Origin: Rhodosorus marinus CCMP1338
Lineage: Eukaryota; Plantae; Rhodophyta
Length of the DNA: 64,000 nt
Direction of reading: 5' to 3'
Assembly: GCA_029953675.1 (NCBI GenBank)
Contig: JAMWBK010000010.1
Span: 1,178,001-1,242,000, forward strand
Below the pieces are notes generated by a model, which saw only the letters and a program-made list of their open reading frames with translations, was not told the DNA's origin and searched no databases. The translations under genes were made by a program, and so were the position numbers. Shown piece after piece: positions 6,228-64,000 of the stretch (position 1 is its first letter; each line of letters begins with the position of its first letter).

Positions 6228-6364
6228 ATGTCGTCGCTAATCAAGATCCAGGCTCCGCAACCGAAACCCTATGACGGGCGGCGCGATGCTTTGACTATCA
6301 GTACCTTCTTGAATAGCCTACGCACGTATTTTAAGTTTGCTCGTCTGCCTGACGACGACGACGA
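6228..6364 (+). pseudogene. Truncated gag fragment (about 45 codons) in the inverted arm
   Basis: Matches the gag N-terminus up to LPDDD, then diverges into unrelated sequence. Confidence 0.85.
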
Positions 6365-42869: not shown

Positions 42870-42917
42870 GCAAGCGTACGAAAACGCTAATTAGGATTAG
42901 CGTTTTCGTACGCTTGC
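42870..42917. repeat. Perfect 22-bp-stem / 4-nt-loop hairpin
   Basis: GCAAGCGTACGAAAACGCTAAT-TAGG-ATTAGCGTTTTCGTACGCTTGC. Confidence 0.95.
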
Positions 42918-43012
42918 TACCCAGCTTGATCCTAAACATTCAGGTAGCTGACAAACTACGAATCACTTCTGGCGACTAGAGTGGCTCTGTGTTACCAACC
43001 CTGCTCTTCACT

Positions 43013-44256
43013 GGACTTTACTAGCATAGCCTGAAGCGCTACGCAAGGCGTGAAGATGAACTAATAACTAGGGAGGGAAGCATGCAACCCCAGGCGCCGA
43101 TGGCGCCCCTCGGAAAGCATGTCGCTGGAATATCGCCAAAGGGAGACACTTAAACGCCTCAAGAGCGCCAAATATTCAGTAGGATGCTCAGCAAAACATT
43201 TCCGCAACCACTCTAAACCCGACTTAACCACGTGACCAAAGCTTTCCACAATGAATGGCTGGAACCGGTGAGAGCGACCCTCAGCGCAAGGCAGACTGGC
43301 CATGCTCTCAGCATACCGTCGTTCCTTAACTCTTCGAAGGGCTGAAGCCGCGGCCCCCCGGCGGCGGGCGGCTGCGGTGAGGTGGGCGCTGGCCACGGGG
43401 CAGGTAATCGCAAGGTCCACATATGTTGAGCGTCTGGCAGCAGCGTCGGAGACGAGGAGATCGGCTATACAACGGGGCGGTGCAGAGTCCGAGATGGATC
43501 TGGGCAGTTCCGACTCAACCTCAACCGTATGCCCTATCCGAGTCAAAAATTCGCTGAGGATGTACTTGAGGCGAGTGTGACGCCTCGTACGGAGACCTCG
43601 CAACAGTCCGCAGGAACCCAGGAAGTGGTAGCCACAAGCGTCAATCCGGCTCTCACATCCCTGACAGAAAGACGGCCGATTAGAGTGCCACGGAGCCTGT
43701 GGCAAACCGAGATAGATCCGTGCGGCAGAACGGAACTGGAAAGCATCGAGACGATGACTCAATGACGACGGTAGAGTGGTTAACCACAAGTGCGAGAGGT
43801 GGCCTCCCATGCCGCGGAGACGAGCGGCAGTGGTAGGCGGCGTGAGAGGAGAATTGAGCATGACTGTGTGAGCGGCACTGTGTTGGCCCCAGGTGAGGCT
43901 ATGTTGAATCACATCAGCGCGGGAGCTCCACAATCGGCTCAAACCCGGGTAGTCTGCAACAGGGGACCCGGGGCTAGCCTCTCCGTCATCGGCAAGAACT
44001 CGGTCGAGGGGACAATCCTCAATCGCTTCAGCTCGTCCCCATAACAGCTCCCTCCAGGAACGAAAGCGGGACCGATTTGCGTCCGGCACGGCGTTGCACC
44101 TCCTGAACGCGTGTTGAAGACCATCATAAATTGTCAAAAGCGGGGGCGGCAGGGTCACTGGATCCTCGTTGGTCAAAGCTCGAGCCAAGAGGCAGGCACT
44201 TCGCATCTGGAAGGTCACCAACGTTCGCAGCGCGGTAGCCCAGGAGGCAACCGCCG
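43013..44256 (-). mobile_element. CRE-clade copy 2: 5'-truncated, intact zinc knuckle + restriction-like endonuclease ORF and 3' UTR, with a 12-bp TSD
   Basis: CQGC-x9-HFLGSC, RHTRLK, ADLLV, YVDLAI, KERRY, FIVESFG. CTGCTCTTCACT occurs at both 43001-43012 and 44257-44268. Confidence 0.93.
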
Positions 44257-44829
44257 CTGCTCTTCACTAAGTCCCACTGTCATAGAAACCCCATCTAGGT
44301 CCAGTCAATATAAAGATCTTGATTGGTTCCAAGCCTTTTCGATTGACTTACGGGAGTCCCGGATCTGGACTTTGTACCCGCCCTTCTGAACTGCCAGAAA
44401 TACTTTTGACCTCCGTTGTATTTCTCCAAACTTCGGTACCTTATTTTACTGTTTCGCTGTCCCGGAAGCCCACCACTTGGGCCCAAGTAATCAACGTCTG
44501 CCAATGCATGCCGGCCTATTGTGAGGCTCTCAGTGACTCTACCTCAGGTCTGCAGTATACTATCTATACACCGGATATACTATTCTAGCTACGCCATCCT
44601 GCCGGTGCTTCCAACTATGCCAAAGGCGCAATATCATCGCCGTCCAAGATGAGCATAGAAAGTAATTGGATGGAGCTTCAGGGGAGCATTCGATAGGTGT
44701 AGATCAGTCGGAATCTGCTAGCACCTCCCCCTTCGAATGATCACCCTGATTAAACCATTCATTCACATCGATGTCCAGGCATTTATTACAAATTGTTCCG
44801 TAAAACAATACGGATAGACGTTGTTTAGC

Positions 44830-45840: not shown

Positions 45841-46060
45841 ATGTTGAATGAATTTGTTTAATCGGAGACTGACGGAAAAAACGTGGAGGGGAAAAAAAGA
45901 CTAATCGCGGGGAGGTCGCGCGGCCTCCAGCATCAAAGCAGTGTGCACACGTAACAGCAAGGAACTAAAACGGGTAAACAACGGGGAGAGACGGTTAGGG
46001 CGCTCGCGGAACAACACTCCCGAAGCCAACGAGAACCAACGGAATCAACGAACCCAAAGC
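45841..46060 (-). repeat. Dispersed ~220-bp repeat ending GATTAAACAAATTCATTCA (family member A)
   Basis: Aligns by eye with 56260-56470 (+), 60523-60715 (-) and the 3' half at 52025-52140 (+). Confidence 0.8.
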
Positions 46061-46187
46061 ACTCATATGTTAAACGAATTGGCCGAATGGGAGACTGAAA
46101 GCACCCCTATGTCAGCGCCGAAATTACTTCGCTATTCAAGAAAGATATTGATTATTTGATTATGATGTTTAAAAATCCAGCTAAAGT

Positions 46188-46303
46188 GGTGGGGGTGGTT
46201 TTATGCTACGCAAGACGTAAAAGGAAACTAGGGACTACTAGGGAGAAGAGCATGTTAAACCCTGGCGGCGGTGGCGCCGCCTCGGCGAGCATGTTGCTAA
46301 AGT
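46188..46303 (-). mobile_element. Short CRE 3'-end insertion (~110 bp) present in ABCG duplicate A only
   Basis: Homologous to the end of the RLE ORF and the 3' UTR. Flanked by GCTAAAGT at 46180-46187 and 46296-46303, and absent at the paralogous site near 60800. Confidence 0.8.
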
Positions 46304-46663
46304 AATCTCTAAGTGAAGAGTGATAACGGGATTCCGGTAACTCAATGGATAGCGGAAGCGGACAACAGAAGAGTGCACAATAAACAACAGTGTTGTATTT
46401 AGTAACTCTGTTCAGCTCGGCGCAAGCCGAGCGCAAACCCTCACAAACGGAAGCAAATACCTGCTCATGCCCATAGTTTTTTTGTAGTACTGCTGTTGTG
46501 TGGCTTGGCATACGGCCTCCCACGGCGTAATCAGACTTCAATCTTGAGCAAAAATTGCAACTGGCAAATAGTTTTAAATTAGATAACTTAGGAGTTAAGC
46601 TCGTGTAGCGCAGGTCCAGCGCAGCAAGCAAGCTGGCCAGATCAATCAATCCGCAGACTTTTC

Positions 46664-49600
46664 CTAACGCTTCGTATACCGGAGGTGCTTGAACCCGAGG
46701 TAACCGACTATCCATGAGAATAACGTGAATCCAGCCAGAGCTCCTACGGAAACCCACTTGCCATAACCTGGCACTCCGTATATTTTCAGCAGTTCGTCTC
46801 CGCTTGTAATTGGGCAGAACTGACATTCACTGTAGGTGGCGTTAATTGTCAACGTCTGGTATTCACCTAGGTACGAAAAATAAGTCACATTCAGTACGCA
46901 GTTTTAACAGAGCACTAGCTTGACCTTGAAAGGGGTTCAGCGAAATCTTCGTACTGTGAGAGGGAATCGATTCACAATCTGGGAACGCATACGTATCGTT
47001 ATCGTTTCCAGGAAAAGGGAAAGCATGGAGCTCGTTGGCTGTACACTCGAACTCCACTCCAGTGACGACGGCTTTCATAACGCCAGCCAGGTAGTAGCCG
47101 ATCGGATTAATCCAGTAGATCCAGATATAGTACACAGGTATTGAGTCCGCCGGGGCCATGAAACCAGCGAAGAGTTTGAATATGCTTTTCATAAAGGGGA
47201 CCAAGGTCAGCCCAATATATTCAGTAGGGCTAATTGCACCAAGCATAGATCCAAGGGCTACGGCCCACAGAGCGAAGGAGAATTGAATGACGAAGAAGTA
47301 TCCGAATGCAGATGCTAAGAGCCAAACGAGAACAATACAAAAAATGCGTCAGATCGTTGTCGAATGGCACTGCTCGGGCGGCGTCGCAACGCGTTTGTAT
47401 GGAGTGCTTCTCACTTACCCTGAAACCCGACCATGAAGAAGAACATAATACTGAAGACGAAGTTGGTTACCAGCGTGAACGGTGCGTCAGCAACCAGCAG
47501 AGGGATGTAGTACGCTAATGCTGAGTAAGCGCCCGCGCCACATTCTCGATAGAAAGCAAGCCTGTCATGGAGAACGTTGCCAACAGCGCTGTTTATGCTG
47601 ATCAGGGCAACATTACCAGACAGGTAAGCCGCTGCAGCGAGGGCGGTCTGTCCAGTTTGAGTTTTCCCTAACTGAAAGAATGAAAGGCCGAGAATCACAG
47701 CTTGGGTGACCGCAGTGATGAAGCGCGTGAAGTGAAGCTCCGGGTTCCTCCAGTTCACAGTGCAGAACCGCTTCAGGTTCGCAACGAACTGCACTCGAAA
47801 GCTTGTTGGGAAAATATTGTCAACCTTGATGTGGGACGCCTTGTCTGGCACTATCGTAGGCTTGCCACATTTCGTACGCTCTAGGCTCCCCATGAGTTCC
47901 TTGTTCTCAGGGCTTAGTAGCCAAATCTCGTGCCAGTCCTGCTGGCCCCCCTACAACCAAATCAGCGAATCCCATAAGACTAGGTGAGCATTCCACATCT
48001 TCAGCAACATCTGAAGGGAGCTCTCTCCTTACCCGCGCTGTCGTCGCAGTACCAATTTGGTGGAGCATATAGTCCGCTGGGTTCAACTTGGGATCCATGG
48101 GATCTCCTCCGTTCTTCTCAAAGTACGTAATCATTTGTGATCCCTCTTCTCCCAGATCTCCAAAGTAGGCCACTCTGCCGCCGCTCTGCAGGAGCAGTAC
48201 ACTGTCAAAGAAGGAGAACACCTCTTTGGACGGCTGATGAATGGTGCACAAAACCGCGACGCCGGTATCGGAGACCCTCCTCAAAACTTTTGCCATCTGC
48301 GTCAAAACACGGTCAATCGTGCGTGCACTGCTAAGGCCAGCTTCCAATTTCGTAAACGGGATGACCAAGGACTGCGCTCACCTTCAACGCCGCCCTGGAA
48401 TCCAATCCCGAAGTTGGCTCGTCCAGGAACAGAATAGACGGTCGAACTACGAGCTCCACAGCGATCGTGAGACGCTTTCGCTGCTCAGAAGAAAGGCCAA
48501 TTGCACCCTCGGGAATATCGACAAGCTCATTTTGAATCTCACGCAGCTCCAGTAGGTCTATGGTATTCTCTATCTGGTCTTCTCTCTCCTTGTCCGAGGT
48601 CTCCTCCGGCAGCCTCAACCTCGCAGAGAACTCGATCGCCTCCCGAACTGTCGTCTTCGAAACGTGAATATCGACCTGCTCCACATACCTATGCACAAAA
48701 GAATGCACCAGCAACCATTTTGAAACACGGTAGTGCGTCAGCGATAGCACTGCTTCCAGTCGAAACAACGAAAGAAACAAGCTTCTGCCAACTCTCTTAC
48801 CCTGAAACTCTTCCGATCGGGTAATCCAGAGGATATCCGTTTACAAGGACTTCGCCAGTCATCGTACCCTTGGGCTTGCGCTGTGCAAGGACGTCCATGA
48901 GCGTCGTTTTGCCGGCTCCCGAAGATCCCATGAGCGCACACAGCCTTCCTGGCAGTACGTACCCACACACATCGTGCAGAAGTTCTTTCTTCTCATTCCC
49001 GCCAATCGGGACTGTGTATGACACGTCCTTCCATGTGAAGTGGGCCTCCCTAAAGCCGACCTTCATTTCGTCCTCTGGCAAACTGAGGTCGATCGCTTCG
49101 ACACCTAAGTTTGTGGGTTTCGCTTTTTGCGATAGGAGGGTCGTTCCGCGATACCGCGTTCGTCTTGCGATAAAAATTACTGCGAGAAACATCACCAACG
49201 ACAGGCCCCACAAAGCTAACAGTGAATATGCGCGCCAGGAGCTAGTTCAATAAAAGGCATTTGGCGATCGAAAGAGAGTCACGAAGCAAGGCGTCAGGAG
49301 TTGTTCATCCGTTTCCCGTCACTTTTTATGCAACGCTTACACTCCAATTGGGTAGCCAAATCGAACCCAAAGGTACGCCTCTCCCGTCGATATAGTGCAT
49401 ATCTTGTCCGCTTCAGGGACGTACTGGTTCCAAGGGAGCAGCTCTTGGGGAGCACATTCGAAGACAAGGCCGACGAACTCGTTATAGGCCAATCCACGGA
49501 ATGCGTACTGAACCGGTGAAATCCAGCCAATCCAGACGAGCCAGCGCGGGTCATCCCTGAGCGCAATGAAGTAGCCGCTGTAAATCTGGAATACAGCGTT

Positions 49601-51784
49601 GAGAAAACTGACTAAGACGACGGCTGTAGTTGAGTTTGGGCAAGTAACAGTGAATAGTCGCCCAAGCATGTCCATGTTGAACCGGAATGTAACAACCATG
49701 AAATAGAAATAGGCGAAGTGGGAGCCCCTAAAAACGAGCGAACAAGAGTTGCTTTCTCAGCTCAGGTCCAGCAATGCACATTCAGAGTCTGAGCGCCTCA
49801 CCTATCGTTCATGTTGAAGCCAACAAGCGCATAGAGAACACTCGAAAATAGCAGCGAGACAAGCAAGTTGAGAACCAGAGCGTCCACGATGCCCGCGATC
49901 TGGAAAGGAGCAGCGTTGTAAAAGTGGGCTGCCCTTTGTTTCAGGAAGATATTGTTTTCTGCGAAAGCTTTCTTGATTCCCTGCGTGGCAGCTACGGAGC
50001 ACAGCCGAGATCAAAGAGGATTAGCTTGAGCCTTACGCTGTACCTGAGATTGGAGATGAGATAAGACTTACTCGCAAGAAAGATACCGAGGACCACAAAA
50101 ACTACCCCGGTCCTTTCATACGCTCCACGCAGCGTAAGCGGAAGCATGTAAAACAGGGTCCCGGCGAGCAATGCCATGATCAACTTGCTCACAAATTCGA
50201 CAACAACCGCACTCTTATCCCAGGATACCCTCATTGAACGTTTCAGTAGGATTCCCAGCTGACTAGTTCTTGTCTGCAAGCACTCCCGGCCAAAGAACTT
50301 CTTCGAAATTTCATCTGCTTCAGAGTGCCTTCCCGAAGTACCGCGGAAGCCCTCTTCGATCTTCTTGCGGATGTCGGCATACAGCTCACTGTTTTTAAAA
50401 GCCTCCTCAAATTCGTCGACGGCAGTTAGCTCCTTGCCTTCGAAATCCTTCATCTTAACTGACTCAGAAGAACTTGGGTTGGACACGGCCAGCAAAAAGT
50501 CAGCTATCGATTTCGCGGGAGGTCTCTTAAACCCCATTTCTCCAAAGTACCCCTCAACCTTCTCTCGGGGACCGTAGTAGATGCATTTTCCGCTGTCAAG
50601 AACACAAATCTGTTTCCCATAGCACAATTTCCATCAGCAAATGCATGGCTCACAAAGGAGAGAGGAGCACGCCAGGCCGTGGTGTTCGGAACCAGAGCAG
50701 CTAACCTTGTCGAACTGTTCGAATACATCATTTCCAGGCTGCTGTAAGGCCATGAAAACTGTCAGCTGTAACGCGTCGGCCACCTGCCGGACGCCCTTTA
50801 CGATGTCGAGGGTTGTGGTCGCATCCAGCCCTTTTGAAATACTATCGAAGAACACGAGTGAGCCCATGCTTCCGCAAAGCATCTCTGCGATGGAAACACG
50901 CCTTCGCTCTCCTCCAGAAACTCCTCGCAATGATGCGTCGCCGACAGCAATATCGAGGGTATGGTTGATCCCTAATAAACGGGTGATCAGCTCAACACGA
51001 TTTCTCCGAATCACTTTCGCGAAGGGTAGAAAGTCCGGAATACCGCACTTCGCAGCGAACTCCAAAGTCTCCCGTACGGTCAGTACCGGGTAGTGTGCGT
51101 CGTCCTGGCGAACTCTTAGCATGGAGTGGGCGTAGAGCTGTCGGTTGCTTTCTTCCCAGATATCATCTCCGTTAATAAGCACCTCGCCGCGTACGGATTC
51201 GTACTGGTTCGTAACTCCGGAGAGGAGGTTCAACATTGTCGTCGTTCCCGCGCCTGGTGGGGCCTGAATGAGGACCATCTCGCTCGGTTCGAGGTAGCCC
51301 GACACTCCGGAGAGAATGCTTTTTGACATTTTTTCATCTTTCGTGCAGGCCACAATCTTCCCCGTCTTCAAGAACGGTGCTATCAGCCTCCCGCCAACTG
51401 TACTGTGCCCGAGTTTCTCAGCAAAAGGGACTACAGCCCCAATCTGAACAAAAGGAAAGGTTCCAGGAGGCTCGTCTCAGATAAGATCCTGAAAAAACCG
51501 CGGCGGATAGACCACAGTAACATGTGAAACAGATGGCTTACGTCATTCCAAGTTACGCCGTATCCACCCATTTCATGCCCAGTGAACATGGTGAGGATAT
51601 CGTAGAACAGCTGGTGAGATTTCTCAGAGTCAAACTGTGGGTTGCACGGCTCATACATCGGTTCCTCATACCACGCCCCGAAATGATGTTCTACTGCCTC
51701 CCTTCGTTCACGAAGCACCTCGAAGCTCTTGCCCACAACAAAGCGGGCAGTCCAGCCGCACCAACCACCAGTAAAGCAGTCCAT
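46664..51784 (-). CDS. Full-size PDR-type ABCG transporter, copy A (NBD1-TMD1-NBD2-TMD2), multi-exon
   Basis: NBD1: APPGAGTTT, VSGGERRRVSIAE, FFDSISKGLD. NBD2: GSSGAGKTTLMDVLA, LSSEQRKRLTIAVEL, LFLDEPTSGLD, CTIHQPS. PDR ECL motifs AFRGLAYNEF and WIYWINP. Confidence 0.93.
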
Positions 51785-52024: not shown

Positions 52025-52160
52025 AAGCAATGTGTGAACACGCTCCTTTGATGTTCGAGGCGCGATGTCTCGCTAGCGGAGAGTCTTTTTTACCCCTGGG
52101 GATTTTTTCTTTCAGTCTCCGATTAAACAATTCATTCAACCCAAGCCGGCTTTAACGCTC
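52025..52160 (+). repeat. Truncated member of the ATTAAAC-(ATTC)n repeat family plus a second bare terminus
   Basis: ...CTTTGATGTTCGAGGCGCG...TTTCAGTCTCCGATTAAACAATTCATTCAAC, then CCATTAAACAAATTCATTCAT. Confidence 0.75.
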
Positions 52161-52379
52161 CATTAAACAAATTCATTCATAGTCTGGGGCCCATTCTTTT
52201 CCGAGAGCCCACCCACTCCCCCCCCCCCAAAAGACGCTGTCAGCGAAAGACATGTTCACTATTGAAGTAGCATCTAATATCTTCCACATCACCCTGCGAA
52301 ATTCAACAAAAAAGGAGCGGACGTTTTACGTGAGCCATTACTGTCAGGCTGTTGAGTATCTGGGACGCCTGTGTCCTTT

Positions 52380-52586
52380 AAGTATCGCCCTCTGGCGATA
52401 TTCTAGTAGCATCAGCAGGGGCGCTGAGACGCGGCACCGCCGCGCCTGGGTTTGCACGCTTTTCTCCCAGTTCCTAGTGTTCCATTTCACGCCGTGCGTG
52501 TAGCGCACCAGGCTATGCCAGTAAAACCAGTCTTCACGCCTTGCGTAGCGCTTCAGGCTATGCTAGTAAAGTCCAGTAAAACCAGT
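52380..52586 (+). mobile_element. Two nested CRE 3' ends: an older ~140-bp tail plus a ~44-bp tail inserted into it with a 12-bp TSD
   Basis: LSIALWRYSS...RHRR matches the end of the RLE ORF. AGTAAAACCAGT occurs at 52520-52531 and 52575-52586. The inner 44 bp is identical to the 3' end of copy 2. Confidence 0.85.
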
Positions 52587-53181
52587 AAAACCCCCACTGT
52601 CAGGTACGTTGAACAATGATTTGAATATAATAATTAGATTAATCTGGGTCCAATGGTTGATGAAGATGTGCCTGGGAGACGGTAAAATAAACGGCGGAGC
52701 TTGTTGGAAATATTGACTGCGTGCCCTGTCGCAAGCGGGCTATATTAACCGAGAGGGAAGTTAGCGGAGTGGCGCAAACGCGAATTCCCCCATCGTCAGA
52801 AGTTAAGCAGTCGACAAGCAGATAGAGGTGACGTCATAGGAGCCAAGCGAGATTGCCACAAACAGCAAAAGACATGACACCTCTTTGGACGGGTCTTCGA
52901 CTTTTCAGATTATACTTCGTGTTCTTCGCAATGCTCCGAGCTGTCTCTGTCTCTCTGGCCCTCGAAAGCTGCTTTGCTGTTGGACGCGAGTAAAGAGCGT
53001 CTCCCTTTTCGCTTCTACGCGCCGAATGAAGTGATCATCGTCTATTGTCACTCTCATCCAACTAGAAGAGGAGCGGTCAGTCTACCGGGGTAGTATTAAA
53101 ACTTAGTGCAATATGAGAGTCTGTCACTCTTCCGCATGCAGATGCGGAGCGGTCAGCACAACCAGGTAAGTATGTAGATAC

Positions 53182-53225
53182 GAGAGTGATATGAGAGTCC
53201 GTGGCAGGACTCTCATATCACTCTC
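53182..53225. repeat. Perfect 19-bp-stem / 6-nt-loop hairpin in a patch of short local repeats
   Basis: GAGAGTGATATGAGAGTCC-GTGGCA-GGACTCTCATATCACTCTC. Confidence 0.92.
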
Positions 53226-55553
53226 CAGATGTCAGATCGCGACCATCTGGCCAATCCACCATCGGTATGTGTAAACAATCTAATGTTTGTTTGCCGAAAA
53301 AAAAATCGTCGCAATGATCCTGCTTGCAAAGGGTGCAGGGTCTCTAGGGAATTAAATTGTATGTAAAACAATATTTTGATTGGCTCCATCGCGAAGCATT
53401 ATTTGTCCACGGCGTGGATAAATTTCGATGAGCGCTCAATCCTATAAAACTTAAATTATGTAGTGAACATCTGCACTTTGAATTGCTGGTGAACTTGGAA
53501 CTGCACCCTCCCTTTCCGGATCCTACCATCAGTTTGATCCCGCATAACCGAATATGCCTCCATAGAGAACCAAACATTCCGTCTTTGTCTTTGGTTGGGA
53601 TGCCTGTGATTGGAAAACCAAGGAAAAGGAAAGGAAAAACATTGGAGGATACGCTCAGCATGTCGGAACTATCAAAACCTTTTCTTGGGAGGGATCAAAA
53701 AACACCCAGTTTTCCTCGATTTTCTCTTTGGAACAGATGATATGTGCGGTCGGCCATTTGGCGTAAATCTTCTCTACTAACTAAAGGACAAAGCTCAAGA
53801 TTCTACGTAATTCTACAATTTCTTCTCAAAATATACTCCAGTGATGCTTTCCTCCTTTGGCTTTTAGGTATTGGGCTTGCAAAGGGTACACCGGGAAGAA
53901 GACAAGAAGAAAGGTTTCGTTGGCGACAGGGGGGCAGGGGGTACTTTGATGGCTGCTGTGCGTGCCGCTCCAAAACAAAATGGGACATCGGCAATCAAAT
54001 CTGGAATAAATGTGAAGATCCGCGAGAACGTGCTAACGACAATAGTAACGTCGATAGTATCAATCCGTATGAGATCAATCACTATAGTATCAATCACCAT
54101 GGATGGTACATTAGATCTGCCGACGCGAGAAGCAGATCTTCCTCACAGACAGTATCAGGGCTACTAGTGAAGTGAAGGGCTTAGTGTTCATTGGGAAGCG
54201 GTAGAAAAGGCAGAGAGGAGGGGAAAGGAATAGAATAAAAGAACAGAATTTCCTTGGGTTTGGGTTAAGATGGCGGGTTTCATCGCTGCGTCTGATTTCC
54301 ATTATCTTTGGCATAGAGTCAGTGGCTTTCGTCGCGATCTGTCATTGGAGACCTTTTAGAGTGGTTATATCCTGCTTTAGGTCGATACCGTGTTCAGGGG
54401 GTTTCGTAGGAGATTTAGTTTTACAATAAAATAAAGACAGCTTTGCAAGACAAATTTTCAAGTATGTTGAAACTCAGATCATTGGACAAGGAGAAACGAT
54501 TGGACTTTTTATCAACTAAGAGGTTTTTGGTTGGCCTTGAAAAGTGGTTCAACAGAAACGAACGAGCAGTCAGTCCATAAGTTAAAATGATTGATAATTG
54601 TATCAATTAGTGGCTTTTTTTCAAATTCAATAGCTATTAGATTTCACAGGTGGCGGCCATAATTTTTGTCCCAGCTCTGTTCTGCGAGGTTCGACATGTC
54701 TGATCTTCTTTCCCCCCCGCCCCCAAGAAAACCGCGAACCACGGACCACGGTAGCACGTCCTCTACCCCCTTAAGAAAGAAAACTTTCTTCTCAGAAAGC
54801 GATTAATATATAACAATTTATGGCAACAGTGCACTGTTTGAAAGTAATATTTGGGATACATCTGTAATTATTTTGGTAATTAATATCAAAGCTAAGAATC
54901 CATATATTTTCAGCTCCACCTTTTACTCAATTAGATGAAATAAATTTTAGAGAAGTTTCCATGTTTCTCACAGAATCTTGTCCTCGCCCTCGAGCCTTGG
55001 GTACGACCACCCTTTTCGAGAATTCTACACTTTTTTTGTACTTTGTACCAAAGGATTGCAGCGCGCATAAATATCTGAGCGAAACGGGCTGCTCTGTCAA
55101 AGCACTCGTGTCACGCCTTGCTCGTGAATTGCGTTTATTTTTGATCTAAGAATGATTAGCTCTAGTTTTAAGATGATATGTTGGCACGGTTTTTTACTGA
55201 AATATTCCCAAATTCGCGCTTTGGAGAAGACGATCTACGTGCGGACCGCCATTTACTGAAATATTAGAAAATTTGGATGGGTGGATGGATTTACTAGTAA
55301 ACTTTCTCCCTCGAAAAGGGAGGGTAGAGATAGCCTGCCACACAAGAATATAGAAACATATGCAATACGATAAAATGGAATATTTACGTCTCTTTTCTCG
55401 GACAAAGTCAAGTGGACACTGAGTTCCGCTGGTTTTTCTACTTTCGGGTTTTTTTTTCCAGTCTTTGATTAAAGAGATTTACAAATACAGCTTGCGGCAA
55501 AACAAAAAAAATCATTGGGACTCTGAATAAATTAGACGACTACTTACTATAAT

Positions 55554-55676
55554 TAGGGTTGTGCCAAGTGAGTTGGGTTTTTCGATGTTTACCCCTCTAA
55601 ACCCCCCTGTTTTCGTGGGTTTAACCACTTCTGGGTCGTAAACATCGAGAAACCTGACCCACTTGGCACAGCACTA
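55554..55676. mobile_element. hAT-type MITE (~123 bp)
   Basis: Imperfect ~39-bp terminal inverted repeats starting TAGGGTTGTGCCAAGTG / TAGTGCTGTGCCAAGTG. Flanking direct repeat CTATAAT (8-bp ACTATAAT if the terminal A is shared). Confidence 0.75.
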
Positions 55677-56259
55677 CTATAATCGTGTAAAAACTTGTGG
55701 GAAAACCTCCCCCTCACTGTTTTATCCCTCAGTCAATATCGGTTTGAGGGCTGAGAAAACGCGGAAAACGCGGAAAACGCGAAAAAAAGCCTTATGAAAA
55801 ACTACAGGATATAATATACATACGATTACGGACCTTGAAGCCAATCTCCTTTAAGTTTTTTTTCGTATTGTTGGAAAGGGATGGAACGTATTTCCCACTA
55901 TCAGTAGATCAGGTCTTCATTTGTTTTTAATTAAATTGAACACGCACGATCATCCCCCACTTGGGCAGCCGCACCGTTAGTCACCACCGGATTGTCCTCA
56001 TCTAAAAGTTTCGTTTTTTTGTTGTTCTTTCTCCGGCAGAGCTTTTTATTTTGGCGGCACGTTAAACAGATGGACGGACGTTTTGGCCCAAGTTTTTCTG
56101 TTGAAGATAGTTATTTGCCGGCTGGGGAGAGCGCCATGGATTTGCCGAAGCCAGTATGAGACGTCGCAAAGAGTTGAAATATGCGGGGGGCCTTGTTTCC
56201 CCCCTGCATTCGTGCTTCAGCTCTAGCTCATCGCCTGGTACCTCTGGTCATTGAGTCTT

Positions 56260-56470
56260 TGAGTTCATTGATTCCGTTCTCGTTGGCTTCAGGAATTGTT
56301 CCGCGAACGCCTGTGACCGTCTGTCCTCGTTGGTTTTCTCGTTTAAGTTTCTTGCTGTGTCGAATGAACGATGCTTTAATGTTGGAGCCGCGCGATCTTC
56401 GCCGCGCTTAGTCGTTTTTTTCCCGTCAGGGTTTTTTTCTTTCAGCCTCCGATTAAACTAATTCGTTCAG
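56260..56470 (+). repeat. Dispersed ~210-bp repeat (family member B) ending GATTAAACTAATTCGTTCA
   Basis: TTGATTCCGTTCTCGTTGGCTTC...CTTGCTGT...CTTTAATGTTGGAGCCGCGCGATC...TTTCAGCCTCCGATTAAAC aligns with the reverse complement of 45841-46060. Confidence 0.8.
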
Positions 56471-56765
56471 TTTTTCAAGAAATTCGCGTGCAATGTATAC
56501 TTCCTGATTGAACGATGTTGGTAAAACACAATGTTTTTTACTTGCTCTAAATTGAAAAATTAAATTCTAACTTTAACCAGAAAAAGGTAGCTTGATAGTT
56601 CAAAAAAAAGCTCAGTCAATATAATTATCCTGATTGGTTGCTTCCATTTTGATAAAAAATACAAAGTTTTTACTGACGGTGTATAAAAAACTAAAAACTA
56701 AAAACTAAAAACTAAATCGCACCGCATCGTCTTCGATCAAAATTCTATTATAAATCGAAGTGGGT

Positions 56766-56855
56766 GATCGATGGTGTTACGCGAACCCTACCTCCGGCAA
56801 AGAAGGCTTTGATCGATAGTGTTACGCGAACAATACCACCGGCAAAGAAGGCTTT
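56766..56855. repeat. 45-bp tandem duplication
   Basis: GATCGAT(G/A)GTGTTACGCGAAC..TACC.CCGGCAAAGAAGGCTTT occurs twice. Confidence 0.9.
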
Positions 56856-57299
56856 GAAGAAGCTTGGTGAACAGCTCCGATCCTTTGCGCTATAAGTCCT
56901 TCTCGAACTGATGTTGTTCACGCTCAAACACCATGCGCTGCGATCAACAAACCTTACCCCGGCAACTCTCTCGAGTTCCAAAAATCTTATTCGTAAACCA
57001 CTTCCCCAAAAGTCGTCTCTCTCTTTGTCTGTATCTCTACACCCCCTCCCCTTTGGACTGAGGAACTACTTGTGCATCTCCCTCGTCAAAAACGACGACT
57101 TGTCAACCATAAATTGTAGGTAGACCTGCACATGCCTGAGAGTCCCCGGTTTAGCTTTGGTTTTCTATTTGCCGTGAGTAAAAACTTTGTATTTTCTATC
57201 AAAAGCAACCATGGGCTTTGTCCCATAAAAGGTTTGATAACGACCGATTGCGTCCGATATTTTTCAATGCCTCTTTTTGGGTGGATGGTCGTTCGCTGT

Positions 57300-57570
57300 T
57301 GGGCTTTGGGACTCTCGCTTGGCGAAATAGCAGTGCTGAATGATTACGCTGGCGAAATAAACCCATTCGAGTATTGGCGAAACGCAGAGAGGCTCCTTGA
57401 GCCAAGTCCCCCGATTCGTTCTCGGATACTGCCATCACATAGCCGAGACTGTTTTTATCTGCGAAAAGCACGAAGACGCAAATCAGAAACAGGCTCGACC
57501 TTGCGAAGCTCAAAAAACTTGAAGCAATTAAACTCTTTCATCGCACATCCCAGCCGAGGAACCGCAATCG
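57300..57570 (+). pseudogene. Frameshifted hAT transposase C-terminal dimerisation-domain remnant
   Basis: INPFEYWRNAE, then (other frames) SLSQVPRFVLG and RLFLSAKSTKTQIRNRLDLAKLKKLEAIK, resembling the hATC W...L...ERxFS...RNRL pattern. Confidence 0.6.
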
Positions 57571-58539
57571 CGACCGGCGGATGTTGCCGCTGTTTGAGAA
57601 AGTGCGCTTGTCGACGAAGAATCATTTTCCGACCCCGAAGTGCATGCGTGGGAGGCCGAGAAGGAACAGTCAGAGCCCCAGCGCGAAGGGCCAACTCGAA
57701 TCGAGGAAGAGCTGTGCGCCGTGGATGATCAAACGTTTCCGACGGAGAGGAAGTTCCCCACTTGTTGTCGGAGCCAGAACTCGAAGAAGAAGAAGAAGAT
57801 TACACGGGACACCTTGGAAATTCAGCAGACGCTCATATCTTCGGACACACCCGCGGCGGCTAGAATGGAGATGGAGATCACTATGCTCATCTGCTCTCGG
57901 AAGAGCTCTCCATCATGGAGGGTAGACAGGACGGGTTTCGGTTCTTGAATACTATTGACGCCTCCACGAGCATGAGATATATGTTTAGGAGTACGTTCGA
58001 GATCATCCTGAGAAGTCTGGGCGCATCTATTGACTAGCAGTACAATATTCCTAATAAAGCAAGCCTCAAGCCTCATATAAGAATGCTCATACTGGAAGGC
58101 CCTAGCTTTTGATTTCACAAACAACCGCTCGTAAACGCATAACATTCAATAGCTGCTATCTTAAGTTTACGCGTTGCTCCGCGCATATTTAAGATTTCGG
58201 AGGAATCATCCAGACTCTGGGCTTGATGTACAACCAACGGCATTGCGGGCACAAGAATTCTCCAACTTCATTCTTAGGTACACATATCTTGAAGCAACTC
58301 ATGGTTGCCAACCTACTGAAGCTACTGGTCATGTGACTCGAAGGACCAGTCCAGTCGGCTTGCTCCGAGGGTAGCTCCCGCGGGGCTAGGGAAAACGCAC
58401 GGCACAAAGAACTCGCCTCGAGAACAATGGCGGTTGAACTCCGCCACTGGGTTAACCCAAGAAGATACTGAAACGCGACCAAACATGTGGTCGATCCCCA
58501 AAGTACTCACGCTACCAGAGGACATGAGAAAACTCCCTT

Positions 58540-58750
58540 CGCAATGCGCTTGGGCTACTCCCAGTCCTTGCCACCTTAACCGCCTTCTTCAGCCAGTGCC
58601 ATGATAGCCTAGTACACCCTCCGCAACCACCTCTACTCGTTGCATTGCAGATCTCCTGGTCTCGGACGCAGCCGCCAGACGTGCAGCATATATGGACCTC
58701 GCTGTCACTTGCCCTGTGTCAGGTACTTATCTCCCTTCTGCCGCTAATGC
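58540..58750 (+). mobile_element. Old CRE RLE-region fragment
   Basis: CIADLLVSDAAARRAAYMDLAVTCPVSG aligns with CIADLLVSDAAARRSTYVDLAITCPVAS of copy 2. Confidence 0.8.
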
Positions 58751-58972
58751 CGGAGATGATTGATTATTGGACTAACGTTGATTGAATATCGGACGATTTA
58801 TCGCACCCGTTTATCGGACGGGCAATCGGACCTGTTTTTTCAAAGAATGTCAATCAGACACCCCCCCCTTTTATTCCGTTCTGCAATAGTGTATCCACTT
58901 CAAAAAACTATCGGACCGTCCGCTAAACGTTATCGGACGGCCCACGACAACCTTAGCATGTGGTGGTTTACT

Positions 58973-60431
58973 GGCTTTATTAGCATAGCCTAAAGCGCTA
59001 CGCAAACCTTGAAAAGGCACTAACAACTAGGTAGGGGAGCGTGCAAACCAAGGTGCCGATGGCGCGCCTCGGCATGCATGCTGCTCGAATATCGCCACAG
59101 AGAGACATTTAAACGCCGCAAAAGTTCCAAGTATTCAACAGGATGCTCAGTGAAACATTTCCGCAACCATTCCAAACCCGCCTTCTGCACGTGACGAAAG
59201 CTTTCCACAATGAAAGGTTGCCTCGCGCTGAGGGTCGGGGGAGCGACCTCAGCGCGAGGCAGACTGGCCATACTCTCAGCATACCGTCGTTCCTTCACGC
59301 GGCGAAGGGCCGAAGCAGCTGATCCCCGGCGGCGGGCGGCAGCCGTGAGATGGGCGCTTTCCACTGGGCATGTAATCTCGAGGTCAACATATGCTGAGCG
59401 TCTGGTGGCAGCATCGGAGACGAGGAGATCTACGATCAGCGGGGCGGTGCCCTATCCGAGATCGATCTGGGTAGTTCCGATTCCACCTCGACCGTATGCC
59501 CTACCCGAGTCAAACATTCGCTGAGAATGTACTTGAAGCGAGTGTGACGCCTCGTACGAAGACCTCTCAACAGCCCGCATGAACCTAAGAAATGGTAACC
59601 ACAAGCATCGATCCGACTCTCACATCCCTGACAGAAAGACGGCCGATTAGAGTGCCACGGAGCTTGTGGCAAACCCAGGTAAATCCGTGCGGCAGAGCGA
59701 AGCTGGAAGGCATCCAGACGGTGACCCAGTGATGACGGCAGGGTCGTTAACCCCAAATGTGATAGATGGCCTCCCATGCCGCGGAGGCGAGCGGCGGTGG
59801 TATGCGGTGTGAGGGGAGAGTTGAGCAAGATTGCGTGAGCGGCGCTGTGTTGACCCCAGGTGAGGCTATGTTGAATCACATCAGTGCGCGAGCTCCACAA
59901 TCGGCTCAGACCCGGGTAATCGGCAACCGGTGACCCAGGGCTAGCCCCCCCCCCTCGTCGGCGAGTACTCTGTCGATGGGAGAGTCCTCGAGCGCCTCAA
60001 TTCGTCCCCATAACAGCTCCTTCCAGGAGCGAAATCTGGATCGGCTCTCGTCCGGCACGGCGTTGCACTTACTGAACGCCTGTTGCAGAGCAACAGGCGT
60101 TCAGTCAAGAATCGGTAACCAGATGGACACGTGGGACGTGTCAAACTTGTACACGAAGACATTTTCAGTGCAACGAGTCATAGATACTCAAAAGCGGTGG
60201 CGGAAGGGTCACGGGGTCTTCGCAAGTCAGTGCTCTAGCCAAAAGGCAAGCACTTCGCATCCGAAAACTCACCAAGGTGCGAAGCGCGGTAGCCCAGGAG
60301 GCGACCGCCGCAGCCGAGCATACGAGTCCACGGTCGGCCACTCCAAATTCGCCTAATCGTAAAGGTAGGGCAATCTGGCCACGAATTAGGTCCCTGTCAG
60401 GAGCCGCTTCCACATCCAGAGGTTCATCCAA
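58973..60431 (-). mobile_element. CRE-clade copy 4: 5'-truncated and frameshifted, inserted into the tail of an older copy
   Basis: GQIALPLRLGEFG...AAAVASW through RLE and the 3' UTR. TSD TGGTGG(T/C)TTACT at 58961-58972 and 60432-60443. Confidence 0.9.
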
Positions 60432-60513
60432 TGGTGGCTTACTAGCATAGCCTGATGCGCTACGCAAGACGTAAAAGGAAATTAGGAACTAGGAGAAGGG
60501 CATGTAAGCCCAC
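60432..60513 (-). mobile_element. Older ~80-bp CRE 3'-end insertion that hosts copy 4
   Basis: TTGCGTAGCGCATCAGGCTATGCTAGTAAGCCACC tail. Outer TSD ACCTTAG(C/T)ATGT at 58950-58961 and 60514-60525. Confidence 0.8.
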
Positions 60514-60522
60514 ACCTTAGTA

Positions 60523-60715
60523 TGTTCAATGAACTTGTTTAATGGGGGACTGATGGAAAAACCCCCGAGGGGCAAAAAGACTACGCGCGGGGAGATCGCG
60601 CGCCTCCAGCATCAATGCAGCGTTCACACGCCACAGCAAGAAACTAAAACGGGTAAACAACGAGGAGAGACGGTCAGGGCGTTGGGGGAACAACACTCGC
60701 CAAACGAGAACTGAT
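60523..60715 (-). repeat. Dispersed ATTAAAC-(ATTC)n repeat family member C (paralogue of A within the segmental duplication)
   Basis: The reverse complement aligns with members A and B. Confidence 0.78.
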
Positions 60716-61183
60716 GAACCCGATATGTCAGCTCCGAAATTACTTCGTTATTCAAGAAAGATATTGATTCTTAGATTAGGATGTTTAAAAATTGGCTAAA
60801 ATAATCTCAAAATGAAGAATGATACAGGATTCCGATACGAATGGATAACGGAAGCGGACAACAGAAGAGTGCACAAGTGCTGTCTTGCGAACATATTTTA
60901 TAGTCACAAAAGCAACTCCGTTCAGCTCGGCGCAAGCCGAGCGCAAACCCTCTCAAACACAAGCAAATGCCTGCTCATGCCCCATATTTTTCCAGTAGTA
61001 TTAAACCATTCGTTCGTGTATGGCTTGGCTTACGGCCTCGACTGCCAAATCAGACTTCAATCTCGAACAAAAAATTGCCACGGGCAAGTAGTTTTACATT
61101 AGATAACTGAGCAGTTAAGCTCGTGTTGCGCAGGTCCAGCGCAGCAAGCAAGCTGGCCATATCAATCAATGCACAGACTTTTC

Positions 61184-64000
61184 CTAACGCTTCGTAAACC
61201 GGAGGTGCTTGAACCCGAGGTAACCAACTATCCATGAGAATAACGTTAGTCCAGCCAGAGCTCCTACGGAAACCCATTTGCTATAATCTGGTACTCCGTA
61301 TATTTTCAACAGTTCGTCTCCGCTTGTAACCGGGCAGAACTGACATTCGCTGTAGGTGGCGTTAACTGTCACCGTCTGGTATTCACCTGGGGACGAAAAA
61401 TAAGTCACATTCAGCAAGCAGCTTCCAGAGAGCACTAGCTTGACCTTGAAAGGGGTTCAGCGACATCTTCGTACTATTAGAGGGAATCGATTCACAATCT
61501 GGGAACGCATAGGTAGCATTGTCGTTTCCAGGAAAAGGGAAAGTACGGAGCTCGTTGGCTGTACAGACGAACTCCACTCCAGTGACGACGGCTTTCAAAA
61601 CGCCAGCCAGGTAGTAACCGATCGGATTAATCCAGTAGATCCAGATATAGTACGCAGGTATTGAGTTTGCCGGGGCCATGAAACCGGCGAAGAGTTTGAA
61701 TATGCTTTTCATAGAGGGGACCAAGGTCAGCCCAATATATTCAGTTGGGCTAATTGCGCCAAGCATAGATCCAGTGGCTATGGCCCACAGAGCGTATAAA
61801 AGTTCTACGACGAAGAAGTATCCAAATGCAGATGCTTTGCAGCCAAACGAGAACAATAAAAAAAATTCCGTCAGATCGTTGTCGAATGGCAGTGCTCGGG
61901 CTGCGTCGCAACGCGTTTGTATAGAGTGCTTCACACTTACCCTGAAACCCGACCATGAAGAAGAACATAATGCTAAAGAGAAAGTTGGAAAACACCGTGA
62001 ACGGTGCGTCAGAAACCACCAGAGGGATGTAGTACGCTAATGCTGAGTAAGCACCCGCGCCAAATTCTCGATAGAACGCGAGCCTGTCCTGGAGAATGTT
62101 GCCAACAGCGCTGTTTATGCTGATCAGGGCAACATTGCCGGACAGGAAGGCCGCAGAAACAAGGGCGGTCTGTCCAGCTTGAGTGTTCGGTATCTGAAAG
62201 AATGAAAGGCCGAGAATCAAAGCTTGGGTGACCGCAGTGATGAAGCGCATGAAGTGAAGCTCCGGGTTCCTCCAGTTCACAGTGCAGAACCGCTTCAGGT
62301 TCGCAACGAACTGCACTCGAAAGTTTGCTGCGAAAGTATTGTCAAACTTGATATGGGGCGCCTTGTCTGGCACTATCGTAGGCTTGTCACATTTCGTATG
62401 CTCTAGGCTCCCCATGAGTTCGTTGTTTTCAGGGCTTAGTAGCCAAATCTCGTGCCAGTCCTTCTGCCCCTTTAACCAGATCAGCGAGTCCAATAAAACT
62501 AGATGAGCATTCCGCGTCTTCAGCAACACCTGGAGGGGGCTCTCTCCTTACCTGCTCTGTCGTCGCAGTACCAATTTGGTGGAGCATATAGTCCGCTGGG
62601 TTCAACTTGGGATCCATGGGATCTCCTCCGTTCTTCTCAAAGTACGTAATCATTTGTGATCCCTCTTCTCCCAGATCTCCAAAGTAGGCCACTCTGCCGC
62701 CGCTCTGCAGGAGCAGTACACTGTCAAAGAAGGAGAACACCTCTTTGGACGGCTGATGAATGGTGCACAAAACCGCGGCGCCGGTATCGGAGACCCTCCT
62801 CAAAACTTTTGCCATCTGCTTCAAAACACGGTCAATCGTCGAGGGCTGTTAGGACCAGCTTCCAATTTCGTAAACGGGACGACCAAGAACTGCGCTCACC
62901 TTCAACGCCGCCCTGGAATCCAATCCCGAAGTTGGCTCGTCCAGGAACAGAATAGACGGTCGAACTACGAGCTCCACAGCGATCGTGAGACGCTTTCGCT
63001 GCTCAGAAGAAAGACCAATTGCACCCTCGGGAGTACCGACAAGCTCATTTTGAATCTCACGCAGTTCCAGTATGTCTATGGTATTCTCTATCTGGTCTTC
63101 TCTCTCCTTGTCCGAGGTCCCCTCCGGCAGCCTCAACCGCGCAGAGAACTCGATCGCCTCCCGAACTGTCGTCTTAGAAACGTGAATATCGACCTGCTCC
63201 ACATACCTATGCACAAAGGAATGCACCAGCAAAAAAAATTGGAATATGGTAGTTATGAGGACGTGCGTCAGCGATAAGCATTGCTTCAAGTCGAAACAAC
63301 GAACGAAACGAGCTTCTGCCGACTCACTTACCCTGAAACTCTTCCGATAGGGTAATCCAGAGGATATCCGTTTACAAGGACTTCGCCAGTCATCGTACCC
63401 TTGGGCTTGCGCTGTGCAAGGACGTCCATGAGCGTCGTTTTGCCGGCTCCCGAAGATCCCATGAGCGCACACAGCCTTCCTGGTAGTGCGTACCCACACA
63501 CATCGTGCAGAAGTTCTTTCTTCTCATTCCCGCCAATCGGGACTGTGTATGACACGTCCTTCCATGTGAAGTAGGCCTCCCTAATGCCGACCTTCATTTC
63601 GTCCTCTGGCAAACTGAGGTCGATCACTTCGACACCCAAGTTTGCGGGTTTCGCTTTTTGCGATACGAGGGTCGTTCCGCAGTACCGCCTGCGTCTAGCG
63701 AAAAACATTACTGCGAGAAACATCACCAACGACAGGCCCCACAAAGCCAACAGTGAGTACATGCCCCAGGAGCTAGGTCAATACAAGTGTTTGGCGATCG
63801 AACGAGAGTCACGAAGCAAGCCGTCAGGAGCTATTCATCCGTTTCCCGTCACTTTTTATGCAACGCTTACACTCCAATTGGGTAGCCAAATTGAACCCAA
63901 AGGTACGCCTCTCCCGTCGAAATAGTGCATATCTTGTCGGGGTCAGGGACGTACTGGTTAAAAGGGAGCAGCTCTTGGGGAGCACATTCGAAGACAAGGC
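61184..64000 (-). CDS. PDR-type ABCG transporter, copy B (3' half; 5' part lies beyond the window)
   Basis: Same exon structure and NBD2/TMD2 motifs as copy A. Ends GYLGFKHLRFTKR. Confidence 0.93.

Follow-up and report, generated by a model that had tools for sequence, protein, structure and literature searches.

Can a retrotransposon take the 3' tails of earlier insertions as its target? The question is raised by a 64,000-nt stretch of the red alga Rhodosorus marinus CCMP1338 (assembly GCA_029953675.1, contig JAMWBK010000010.1, positions 1,178,001 to 1,242,000), here called the window, in which 5'-truncated copies of a long interspersed element (LINE) with a restriction-like endonuclease (RLE) stand head to tail. 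Younger copies lie inside the tails of older ones, and the arrangement was probably built by tail-directed, sequential target-primed reverse transcription (TPRT) of an R2/CRE-like LINE family, whose open reading frame (ORF) comprises reverse transcriptase (RT), a CCHC motif and the RLE. Besides the window, which has a G+C content of about 48%, two overlapping loci of R. marinus contig JAMWBK010000013 (L001 and L125, 39.7 kb together) and three transcript contigs were analysed, giving 103.7 kb of genomic sequence. The copies in the window are referred to as c1 to c6. The subfamilies are A1 and A2, which are young, B and an old group, and other LINE families met beside them are called C and D. 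Target-site duplications (TSDs) and tails are given on the element strand, an arrow marking the point at which the duplicated sequence begins.

The interval 52500-60525, to which a preliminary description of the window was devoted, is not a single element. It takes in two distinct chains of opposite orientation, separated by about 6.4 kb of other DNA. The first of them, chain 1 (plus strand), starts with the 3' end of a family-C CRE-like LINE (52113-52140) and, head to tail with it, a family-C 3' mini-fragment of about 40 nt (52141-52180), both recognised by a fuzzy match to CAGTCTCCGATTAAAC and a (TTCA)n-like tail. The next member is c5 (52190-52519, the 5' limit being approximate), an old copy only about 70% identical to the others, with indels, which was found by alignment and by a covariance-model match at 52481-52528 (57 bits). 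Its stem-loop (52496-52518) is followed by C at 52519 and then by AGTAAAACCAGT (52520-52531), which is at once the first 12 nt of the c5 tail and the upstream TSD copy of c2. The latter is a 43-bp 5'-truncated A1 copy (52532-52574), consisting of the stem-loop and its own tail, TAGTAAAGTCC, and is identical to the end of c1 at 44 of 44 positions. The downstream copy of AGTAAAACCAGT (52575-52586, a 12/12 match) then leads into the remainder of the split c5 tail, AAAACCCCC, which ends at 52595.

Chain 2, on the minus strand, starts with a family-C LINE 3' fragment (60525-60703) that recurs in the paralogous segment (45843-46024). Within this fragment begins the upstream TSD copy of c4 (ACATACTAAGGT, 60513-60524), its first 6 nt being, by alignment, the last 6 nt of the family-C tail. 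There follow c4 itself (60444-60512), a 69-bp 5'-truncated B-type copy that ends in the stem-loop GCGTAGCGCATCAGGCTATGC and a T, and the upstream TSD copy of c3 (AGTAAGCCACCA, 60432-60443), which is the first 12 nt of the c4 tail. Inserted there is c3 (58973-60431), a 1459-bp 5'-truncated A2 copy with a broken RT-linker/RLE ORF, the tail TAATAAAGCC and an 82-bp internal insertion at 60096-60177. The downstream TSD copy of c3 (AGTAAACCACCA, 58961-58972), ie the distal half of the split c4 tail, is followed by that of c4 (ACATGCTAAGGT, 58950-58961). The duplications read AGTAA(G/A)CCACCA for c3 and ACAT(A/G)CTAAGGT for c4, each matching at 11 of 12 positions.

The remaining two copies, both on the minus strand, lie outside that interval. 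In non-LINE DNA stands c1 (43013-44256; 43001-44268 with its TSDs), a 1244-bp 5'-truncated A1 copy in which the end of the ORF, 386 codons with the RLE, is intact. Its TSD, AGTGAAGAGCAG (43001-43012 and 44257-44268, 12/12), is exactly 12 bp long, the bases on both sides being different. The 108-bp B-type copy c6 (46188-46295; 46180-46303 with TSDs) has lost half of its stem-loop and gave only a weak covariance-model match; it has the tail ATAAAACCACCCCCACC and an 8-bp TSD, ACTTTAGC (46180-46187 and 46296-46303, 8/8). Its empty site was found by alignment in a duplicated ABC-transporter segment, where the paralogue near 60793 reads ...ATTTTAGCCAATTTTTAAAC... and is without exactly the 108-bp insert. 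An identity of at least 11/12 at a fixed offset is expected by chance with a probability of 2e-6, or about 2e-4 if 100 offsets are allowed. All five TSDs of the preliminary description were thus recovered at their positions to within 1 nt, the only shift being in the upstream copy of c4 (60513 rather than 60514), and three of the five do begin AGTRA, as had been said. The possibility that c1 and c3 are one insertion duplicated with its neighbourhood was ruled out, as the two are no more than 84% identical and have neither TSD, flanks nor point of truncation in common. A 9-bp TSD for c5, ACTGTCAGG (52340 and 52596), was considered and withdrawn, since homology to the element extends upstream of 52340. 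The same nonamer is seen as an apparent 9-nt insertion inside c5 (52340-52348) and directly after the c5 tail (52596-52604); it possibly marks two stacked copies or a repair footprint.

The copies share a well defined 3' end. In 12 of them the sequence TTGC-GTAGC-GCWYYAG-GCTAT-GC forms a 7-bp helix (96% of cells paired) with a variable 7-nt loop, after which come one pyrimidine, Y, and a short tail of about 10 nt, T-A(G/A)TAAA(G/A)YYC. There is one double compensatory change (GCGTGGC/GCCACGC) and there are three one-sided changes; support from shuffling is weak (41/500), and the covariation statistics are weak because most pairs never vary. The 3' motif has five matches in the window compared to none in shuffled sequence. 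A covariance model of the 3' end detected 11 intact ends and c6 in the 103.7 kb and nothing else, and a search with it for additional diverged tails in the same sequence returned known copies only. The tails distinguish the subfamilies. Those of A1 (c1, c2 and a transcript copy) read TAGTAAAGT(C/T)C, and those of A2 (c3 and four copies in L001 and L125) read (T/C)AATAAAGCC and variants; in subfamily B (c4, c6 and the copy at 14448 of L125) the tail is TAGTAAAACCACC followed by a variable C/A-rich run, and the two older copies, c5 and the one at 2959 of L001, have AGTAAAA(A)CC... tails. The junction between stem-loop and tail in B has the form GCTATGCT↓AGTAAAACCACC.

Both nests that had been noted a few bases past the stem-loop of an older copy are real. 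The duplicated sequence starts one nucleotide after the last paired base, GCTATGC-Y↓AGTAA, and two further genomic nests of the same kind were found beyond the window, on JAMWBK010000013. At 2959/2971 of L001 the TSD is 11-13 nt, (C)(T)AGTAAAAACCA, and the order is ...GGCTAGGC-T↓AGTAAAAACCA, a 538-bp A2 copy ending ...GCCACGC TAATAAAACCACTAGTAAAACTACC, then C-T, AGTAAAAACCA again and GTAAAACAACCC. At 14448/14463 of L125 the TSD is AGT(A/C)AAACCACC, and ...GCTATGT-T↓AGTAAAACCACC is followed by an 802-bp A2 copy ending ...GCTATGC TAATAAAACTCC, then by AGTCAAACCACC and ACCACCACCACCACTGCCACC. A fifth 5' junction is present in a transcript assembly (L122/L123), where a 170-nt A1 copy begins exactly 12 nt after the stem-loop and T of another copy. 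In all four genomic nests, which lie on two contigs, the split in the older tail is found 11-13 nt after Y, in most cases 12, and the same 11-13 nt recur after the newcomer's own tail; 12 nt is also the length of the TSD measured in unique DNA. The non-nested A copies c1 and the one at 5330 of L001 have a short tail and then pass straight into unrelated DNA, so that the AGTAAAACC... that follows nested copies is target DNA and did not arrive with the RNA. As for the B-type tail, it is part of the older element, since the TSD of c4 lies outside the tail and the tail of c6 lies inside the insertion and is absent from the empty site. The nests are independent, sequential insertions with TSDs of about 12 bp, in which the partners differ in subfamily and age.

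The preference for this position is strong. All nine resolved TSDs start with A, those of the A copies with AGT (5/5 resolved insertions of the young subfamilies) and those of B-type and older copies with AC (ACAT, ACTT). The chance that one insertion reaches the single admissible position of one of 11 tails is 5e-5, and four of the five TSD-resolved A insertions are at the stem-loop+Y↓AGT position (P ~4e-17, or ~9e-17 with the published genome-wide element count); tail-into-tail nesting in the 103.7 kb is therefore strongly enriched over random expectation, a check that the preliminary description had called for. The relaxed y↓AGTRA preference which it proposed is not enough to account for this. 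There are 183 YAGTRA sites in the 103.7 kb, about six of which follow a stem-loop, and those were used by four of the five insertions, a result to which a model based on YAGTRA only assigns P ~6e-6 to 4e-5. What is recognised is therefore the context of the tail or some longer motif, for example Y↓AGTAAAACC. A partial match is also used, the target of c1 being CTT↓AGTGAAGAGCAG.

The use of tails differs between the subfamilies. B and old tails of the AGTAAAACC type with an intact stem-loop are all occupied by an A copy (4/4) compared to none of the A tails (0/7; Fisher P = 0.003). Five of the seven A-subfamily tails start with AAT, as A2 tails do, and so lack the AGT motif, which is present in A1 tails (T↓AGTAAAGTCC). 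That the element inserts into its own tail and so regenerates its target is thus a loose description, valid for the whole family and perhaps for A1; the occupied tails are those of older sister subfamilies.

Nor are the chains limited to one family; they are layered, with B upon C and A upon B, and A copies also abut family-D tails. Like c4, the older fragment in L001 (2924-2969) and c5 begin at the ends of family-C tails, in their case (TTCA)n-like, and A2 copies in L001 begin directly after the (GAT)n and GGATC tails of family D. Of nine A-copy 5' junctions, seven have a CRE-like LINE 3' end no more than 15 nt away (P ~4e-17). A family-C copy followed by a 5'-truncated family-C piece was found in at least four cases (52140, 46050 and 45843 in the window, 26205 in L001). 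Family D, also CRE-like, ends ...TAGTTAGCCTCTGAATAAACGGATC followed by trinucleotide tails, (ATC, TTC or GAT)n, for example at 16200-16350, 17160-17200, 8200, 9785 and 12984 of L001; it has twelve 3' ends in 40 kb and forms head-to-tail pairs too.

The protein-coding capacity of the element was examined in c1 and in a related, nearly full-length family-C copy at 21592-26205 of L001. The 386-codon ORF of c1 contains C-x2-C-x9-H-x4-C followed by RRH, an E-rich stretch, IAD and, 14 residues further, VD. The L001 copy has an ORF1 of about 430 amino acids without a Pfam match and an ORF2 of about 1046 amino acids with RVT_1 and, at the C-terminus, the module seen in c1. With solved R2 proteins, a profile built on 19 relatives gave a single unbroken alignment that covers the RT, linker and CCHC and reaches the end of the nuclease (E = 8e-42), whereas the LINE-1 ORF2p matched it in the RT only (1e-16). 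Residues C, C, H, C, R and H are invariant among the relatives and E, D and K nearly so, and c1 has all of them. The signatures of TPRT are also present, ie copies of 43, 69, 108, 1244 and 1459 bp with a common 3' end, TSDs of 8-12 bp and one empty site. The original description of a non-LTR (long terminal repeat) retrotransposon with an RLE is borne out by this end-to-end alignment and the conserved catalytic positions, and the element is, as judged from its sequence, an RLE-bearing LINE of the R2 type.

The designation CRE-type has indirect backing. It agrees with the annotation of the published R. marinus genome (31.19 Mb, 49.03% GC, 8392 genes), whose RepeatModeler/RepeatMasker table lists 4036 LINE CRE/SLACS elements in 24 families (2.82 Mb, 9.04% of the genome), an automated label; the closest named or solved relatives are R2. 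The family-A motif, C-x2-C-x9-H-x4-C-x9-RHT ... E ... IAD-x14-D, fits with small deviations the one quoted for SLACS, CRE and MoTeR, C-x1-3-C-x7-8-H-x3-4-C-x9-10-RHD/N ... E ... R/KPD ... D/E (PMC12857005), a pattern which is common to all RLE LINEs and not specific to CRE. A spliced-leader or telomere-repeat target, the hallmark of the CRE clade, was not seen in the window, where an Rfam search found no gene and no rRNA, there is no telomeric array and the flanks are LINE tails or unique DNA; insertion at the 28S ribosomal DNA (rDNA) site, as in R2, was not seen there either.

Close relatives of the ORF are confined to R. marinus (the assembly GCA_029953675.1, the MMETSP transcriptome and JGI transcript assemblies), at 68-86% identity, and protein searches for more loci added little: 5, 4 and 27 proteins, in the main from unnamed transcripts of other organisms. 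The one match with a name, a weak one, is to an R2-type protein. Among 5.8 billion proteins the RT-RLE lineage stands almost alone. After the handful of R. marinus entries come about 25 unnamed proteins of 800-1050 amino acids from metagenome and transcriptome contigs, one of them from the sponge Ephydatia, at 23-28% identity; many of these carry an N-terminal C-x2-C...H motif that the ORF2 of the alga is without. The locus of one distant homologue (L126) is from an unrelated, AT-rich organism and is uninformative on tails, and a scan of metagenome contigs with GTAGCGCNNNAGGCTATGC (16 specified bases) gave 120 matches, all of them due to chance, with no further similarity to the element. Transcripts of the family exist. 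One of them (L124, 1380-1904) has a family-A copy, 5'-truncated at ...LRTRHHTR, that is fused in frame to a Ty1/copia RVT_2 ORF, an insertion away from any tail.

A mechanism can be proposed from these observations. The incoming RNA ends in the conserved 7-bp stem-loop and a tail of about 10 nt, to which, by analogy with R2 and the stringent-type LINEs, the ORF2 protein may bind. In A1 and A2 the bottom strand is nicked opposite Y↓AGT(A/G)AA, one nucleotide after the helix, as the position of the insertions shows, with an overwhelming preference for the junction of stem-loop and AGTAAAACC-type tail in resident B and old copies. By the same analogy it would be the protein that makes this nick and primes from the 3' end of the RNA, perhaps stabilised by 1-3 nt of pairing. 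Reverse transcription begins at the extreme 3' end of the RNA, as the tail kept by each new copy shows, and usually aborts to give copies of 43 bp to about 2.9 kb. A cut in the top strand about 12 nt downstream accounts for the 12-bp TSD, and the product is a head-to-tail chain with the older tail divided exactly 12 nt from its start. With older B-type copies at family-C tail ends, the chains grow in the order C, B, A. Such stacking might offer a safe harbour in a compact 31-Mb genome.

Several observations weigh against tail-directed insertion as the explanation. The sample is small, the 103.7 kb being about 0.3% of the genome, and both of the regions analysed are rich in transposable elements. 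The L122 transcript junction is not accompanied by the expected downstream 12-mer, perhaps through a switch between copies, during assembly, at the 3' end that they share, and two A2 copies (16355-16964 and 5320-8197 of L001) have no identifiable TSD. At least three A copies are outside tails, ie c1, the L124 copy in the copia ORF and the copy at 5330 of L001, whose 3' flank is in family-C coding sequence, so the preference for tails is not absolute. No N-terminal DNA-binding motif or zinc finger was seen at the N-terminus of the related full-length family-C ORF2. Finally, the occupancy of old and not of young tails could reflect their age rather than their sequence.

How the site is chosen admits more than one answer. 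Recognition was presumably by the element's own protein, through the specificity of the endonuclease or of DNA binding, with possible help from 2-3 nt of DNA-RNA pairing. It is conceivable, if less probable, that the RNA is the guide, its tail (AGUAAAGYCC) pairing with a resident tail, either through the nearly complementary bottom strand or where the tail is transiently single-stranded, while the nuclease is relaxed. The resident tail (AGTAAAACC) and the invading tails (AGTAAAGTCC, AATAAAGCC) are indeed alike in 7-8 of 9-10 nt, and the way in which the nine TSDs start, with A, then AC continuing the (ACC)n tails in the B type and AGT in the A type, resembles junctional microhomology. However, the complete tail in front of each downstream TSD places priming at the extreme 3' end of the RNA and not along the tail, the c1 target AGTGAAGAGCAG pairs poorly beyond AGT, and B-type copies entered family-C tails with no tail complementarity. 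As priming did not use the complementarity of the tails, recognition by protein is favoured over RNA pairing. Structure-directed nicking was also considered; inspection by eye found no DNA hairpin adjoining the target of c1. A perfect hairpin with a 20-bp stem lies just downstream of that target, at 42868-42915.

If the protein reads the site, one may ask, tentatively, whether there has been a succession of lineages, a suggestion that we regard as rather doubtful at present. In each new LINE lineage the specificity of the nuclease or of DNA binding would have evolved towards the 3' tail, in its DNA form, of the lineage before it, C being hit by B and B by A, and a compact RLE protein with no recognisable N-terminal DNA-binding domain would read a motif of about 9-12 nt beside a hairpin. 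In a variant of the suggestion, the tail motif would be the telomere repeat.

Tandems can also arise by reuse of a regenerated target. A TSD leaves an intact target 3' of each insertion, and consecutive insertions at a preferred site then give tandem dimers in which the tail of one 5'-truncated LINE joins the interior of another with the duplicated target between them, a documented route to tail-to-internal LINE tandems and R1 arrays that requires no recognition of tails (McGurk & Barbash 2018, PMC5932611). It may explain the family-C chains, as ACATA(T) recurs at the junctions at 46050 and 45843. For the A-in-B nests it is improbable. The 12 nt between the copies there are the tail of the older element and not its TSD, the TSD of c4 (ACATRCTAAGGT) being outside the tail and the c6 tail being absent from the empty site.

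We think it still harder to regard the nests as single-event composites, in which the RT switches to the 3' end of a second RNA, two cDNAs (complementary DNAs) are joined, and what looks like a TSD is a repeat of the tail, copied from the RNA. R2-type RTs are well known to jump between templates, and the tails do hold degenerate repeats of a unit, eg TAATAAAACCAC TAGTAAAACTACCC TAGTAAAAACC AGTAAAAC at 3499-3550 of L001. Such composites would leave an upstream tail piece of variable length, whereas the piece is always 11-13 nt, mostly 12, as is the TSD of c1 and c4 in unique DNA. If the young copy is deleted together with one repeat, what remains is an ordinary B-type tail. End-to-end jumps would begin at the 5' ends of RNAs, whereas the 5' truncations of the downstream copies fall at four different internal points. 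In a nest, the two partners are of different subfamilies and ages (compare c2, 100%, with c5, about 70%), the TSD of c4 encloses the whole nest, with the remainder of the tail between the two downstream TSD copies, and a composite would in any case still sit in tail-like DNA. The preliminary description had itself allowed that its TSDs might be tail repeats copied from RNA; the upstream piece of 11-13 nt and the origin of AGTAAAACC in the target both speak against that.

Telomere targeting is very unlikely. Here the AGTAAAACC-like tails (compare GGTTTTACT with AGTAAAACC) would imitate the C-strand of the telomeric repeat and the interstitial chains would be by-products of an element resembling MoTeR, FoTeR or Cnl1. 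CRE-clade relatives do target telomeres, the telomeric repeats of red algae are unusual and A/T-rich (eg TTTATT(T)AGGG in Galdieria), and at 14036-14050 of L125 a tail-like motif is fused to a CCCTAA unit. However, the window has no telomeric array, the R. marinus repeat is not given in the genome paper or its supplements, and the targets are single tail units behind a stem-loop and not arrays. In the stretch of L125 around that fusion (13590-14050, minus strand) there are tail-like motifs without a stem-loop (AGTAAAACCACTGG, AATAAAACCACC, GATAAAACTCCAGTAAACCCTAAG), antisense and near the nest, which may be tail-only insertions. That there is no targeting at all, and that selection in a compact genome (8392 genes in 31 Mb, 9% LINE/CRE) merely kept the copies that fell inside repeats, or that the assembly is at fault, is hardly credible, as selection cannot give single-nucleotide precision (P ~4e-17) and the nests on the two contigs differ in sequence, truncation point and TSD, with one junction in an independent transcriptome.

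Other features of the sequences are recorded here for completeness. The 82-bp insertion in c3 contains an inverted duplication, and at the homologous position in L001 (6425-6475) there is an antisense family-D 3' end of about 30 nt flanked by AGTA; insertions may recur at this second spot within the element. The N-terminal and RT fragment of another CRE-like family is present at 41065-42506 of the window (plus strand), at 41-46% amino acid identity to an L001 copy; close to its end lies a tandem repeat of 23 bp (42601-42654), similar to family-C tails in reiterated form. The window's long direct repeats (46.4-49.5 kb and 60.9-64.0 kb) are due to a duplicated gene, not to transposons. The gene, for an ABCG/PDR-type transporter (ABC_tran, ABC2_membrane), lies at 46400-51400 and 60900-64000 on the minus strand, its two copies being 90-97% identical and its ORFs in exon-sized pieces. 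Because homology between the duplicated segments ends at the tail of the family-C LINE fragment that they share (45843 / 60525), that LINE either predates the duplication or marks its edge. A Ty3/gypsy-like LTR retrotransposon (2802-5797 on the minus strand, and 5661-6364), with a CCHC-containing gag and a pol with protease, RT and RNase H, adjoins a 275-nt inverted repeat that is 99% complementary. At 55540-55690 there is an inverted repeat like that of a miniature inverted-repeat transposable element, at 56686-56716 (AAAAACT)4.4, and at 56765-56857 a 45-bp unit repeated twice.

It remains to compare the Rhodosorus element with known systems. No mention of retrotransposons in the genus Rhodosorus was found in the literature searched, and elements of this kind, at 9% of the genome of this red alga, have not been described there beyond an automated label. 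The CRE-clade RLE LINEs (CRE1/2, SLACS and CZAR; MoTeR, FoTeR and Cnl1) share with the Rhodosorus element the general order of RT, C-x2-C...H-x4-C, RH, E, (A/P)D and D and a strong preference for a site, and Cnl1 and MoTeR, like it, form head-to-tail arrays of 5'-truncated copies. In Rhodosorus the target is different, being the interstitial 3' tails of resident LINEs and neither a spliced-leader gene nor a telomere repeat, and there are differences in the protein: RHT in place of RHD/N, and nine rather than 7-8 residues from the second C to H. The related full-length Rhodosorus copy, with an ORF1 and no visible N-terminal zinc finger, may also differ from the clade. R2 is the best solved relative (structures 9nl3, 9dou and 8gh6), with a continuous alignment through RT-thumb/linker, CCHC and RLE, although identity is only about 25%. 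By analogy, integration would likewise be by TPRT with a 3' untranslated RNA structure bound by the protein. Unlike R2, the Rhodosorus element has no rDNA target, makes a 12-bp TSD and has no detected Myb or zinc-finger N-terminus; R2 typically leaves a small deletion or duplication at its target.

In Zepp of Chlorella and in L1 and Alu, new copies enter the 3' tails of residents and build nested clusters of 5'-truncated elements, by means of an endonuclease of the AP (apurinic/apyrimidinic) type and a homopolymeric poly(A) tail as target (a TTTT/A-type nick). The Rhodosorus RLE element instead uses a heteropolymeric motif at one fixed nucleotide beside a stem-loop. The eel LINE UnaL2, a stringent-type element of the L2 clade with an AP-endonuclease, has a stem-loop and short 3' repeats, and we know of no report that it homes to its own tail. 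The Rhodosorus family resembles it in the conserved terminal stem-loop and the short, sometimes reiterated unit, the number of which varies between tails. The double-insertion tandems differ from the A-in-B nests in that the spacer of the latter is the older element's tail and the site is supplied by the element lineage itself. LINEs that build arrays or seek tails are therefore already known (MoTeR, FoTeR and Cnl1 at telomeres; R1 in tandems). What sets this case apart from them is that the target of an RLE element is a heteropolymeric motif, about 9-12 nt long and entered at a fixed nucleotide by a hairpin, that the motif comes from sister lineages, and that the chains are layered as C-B-A.

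These differences have some practical weight. RLE LINEs are being engineered for site-specific gene insertion, and each natural target specificity is informative in that respect. As the target here is a short heteropolymeric motif scattered by the element lineage, the family offers a clean natural system for asking which of three candidates, the nuclease, some other domain of the protein or the tail of the RNA, chooses the site. Stacking on old copies helps to explain how a LINE group can make up 9% of a compact 31-Mb genome with limited damage to genes, and the chains illustrate the origin of ordered head-to-tail arrays, which are possible seeds of satellites. Should the suggested succession of lineages be true, it would amount to a naturally retargetable homing module, precise to the nucleotide and distinct from R2 with its zinc-finger and Myb guidance.

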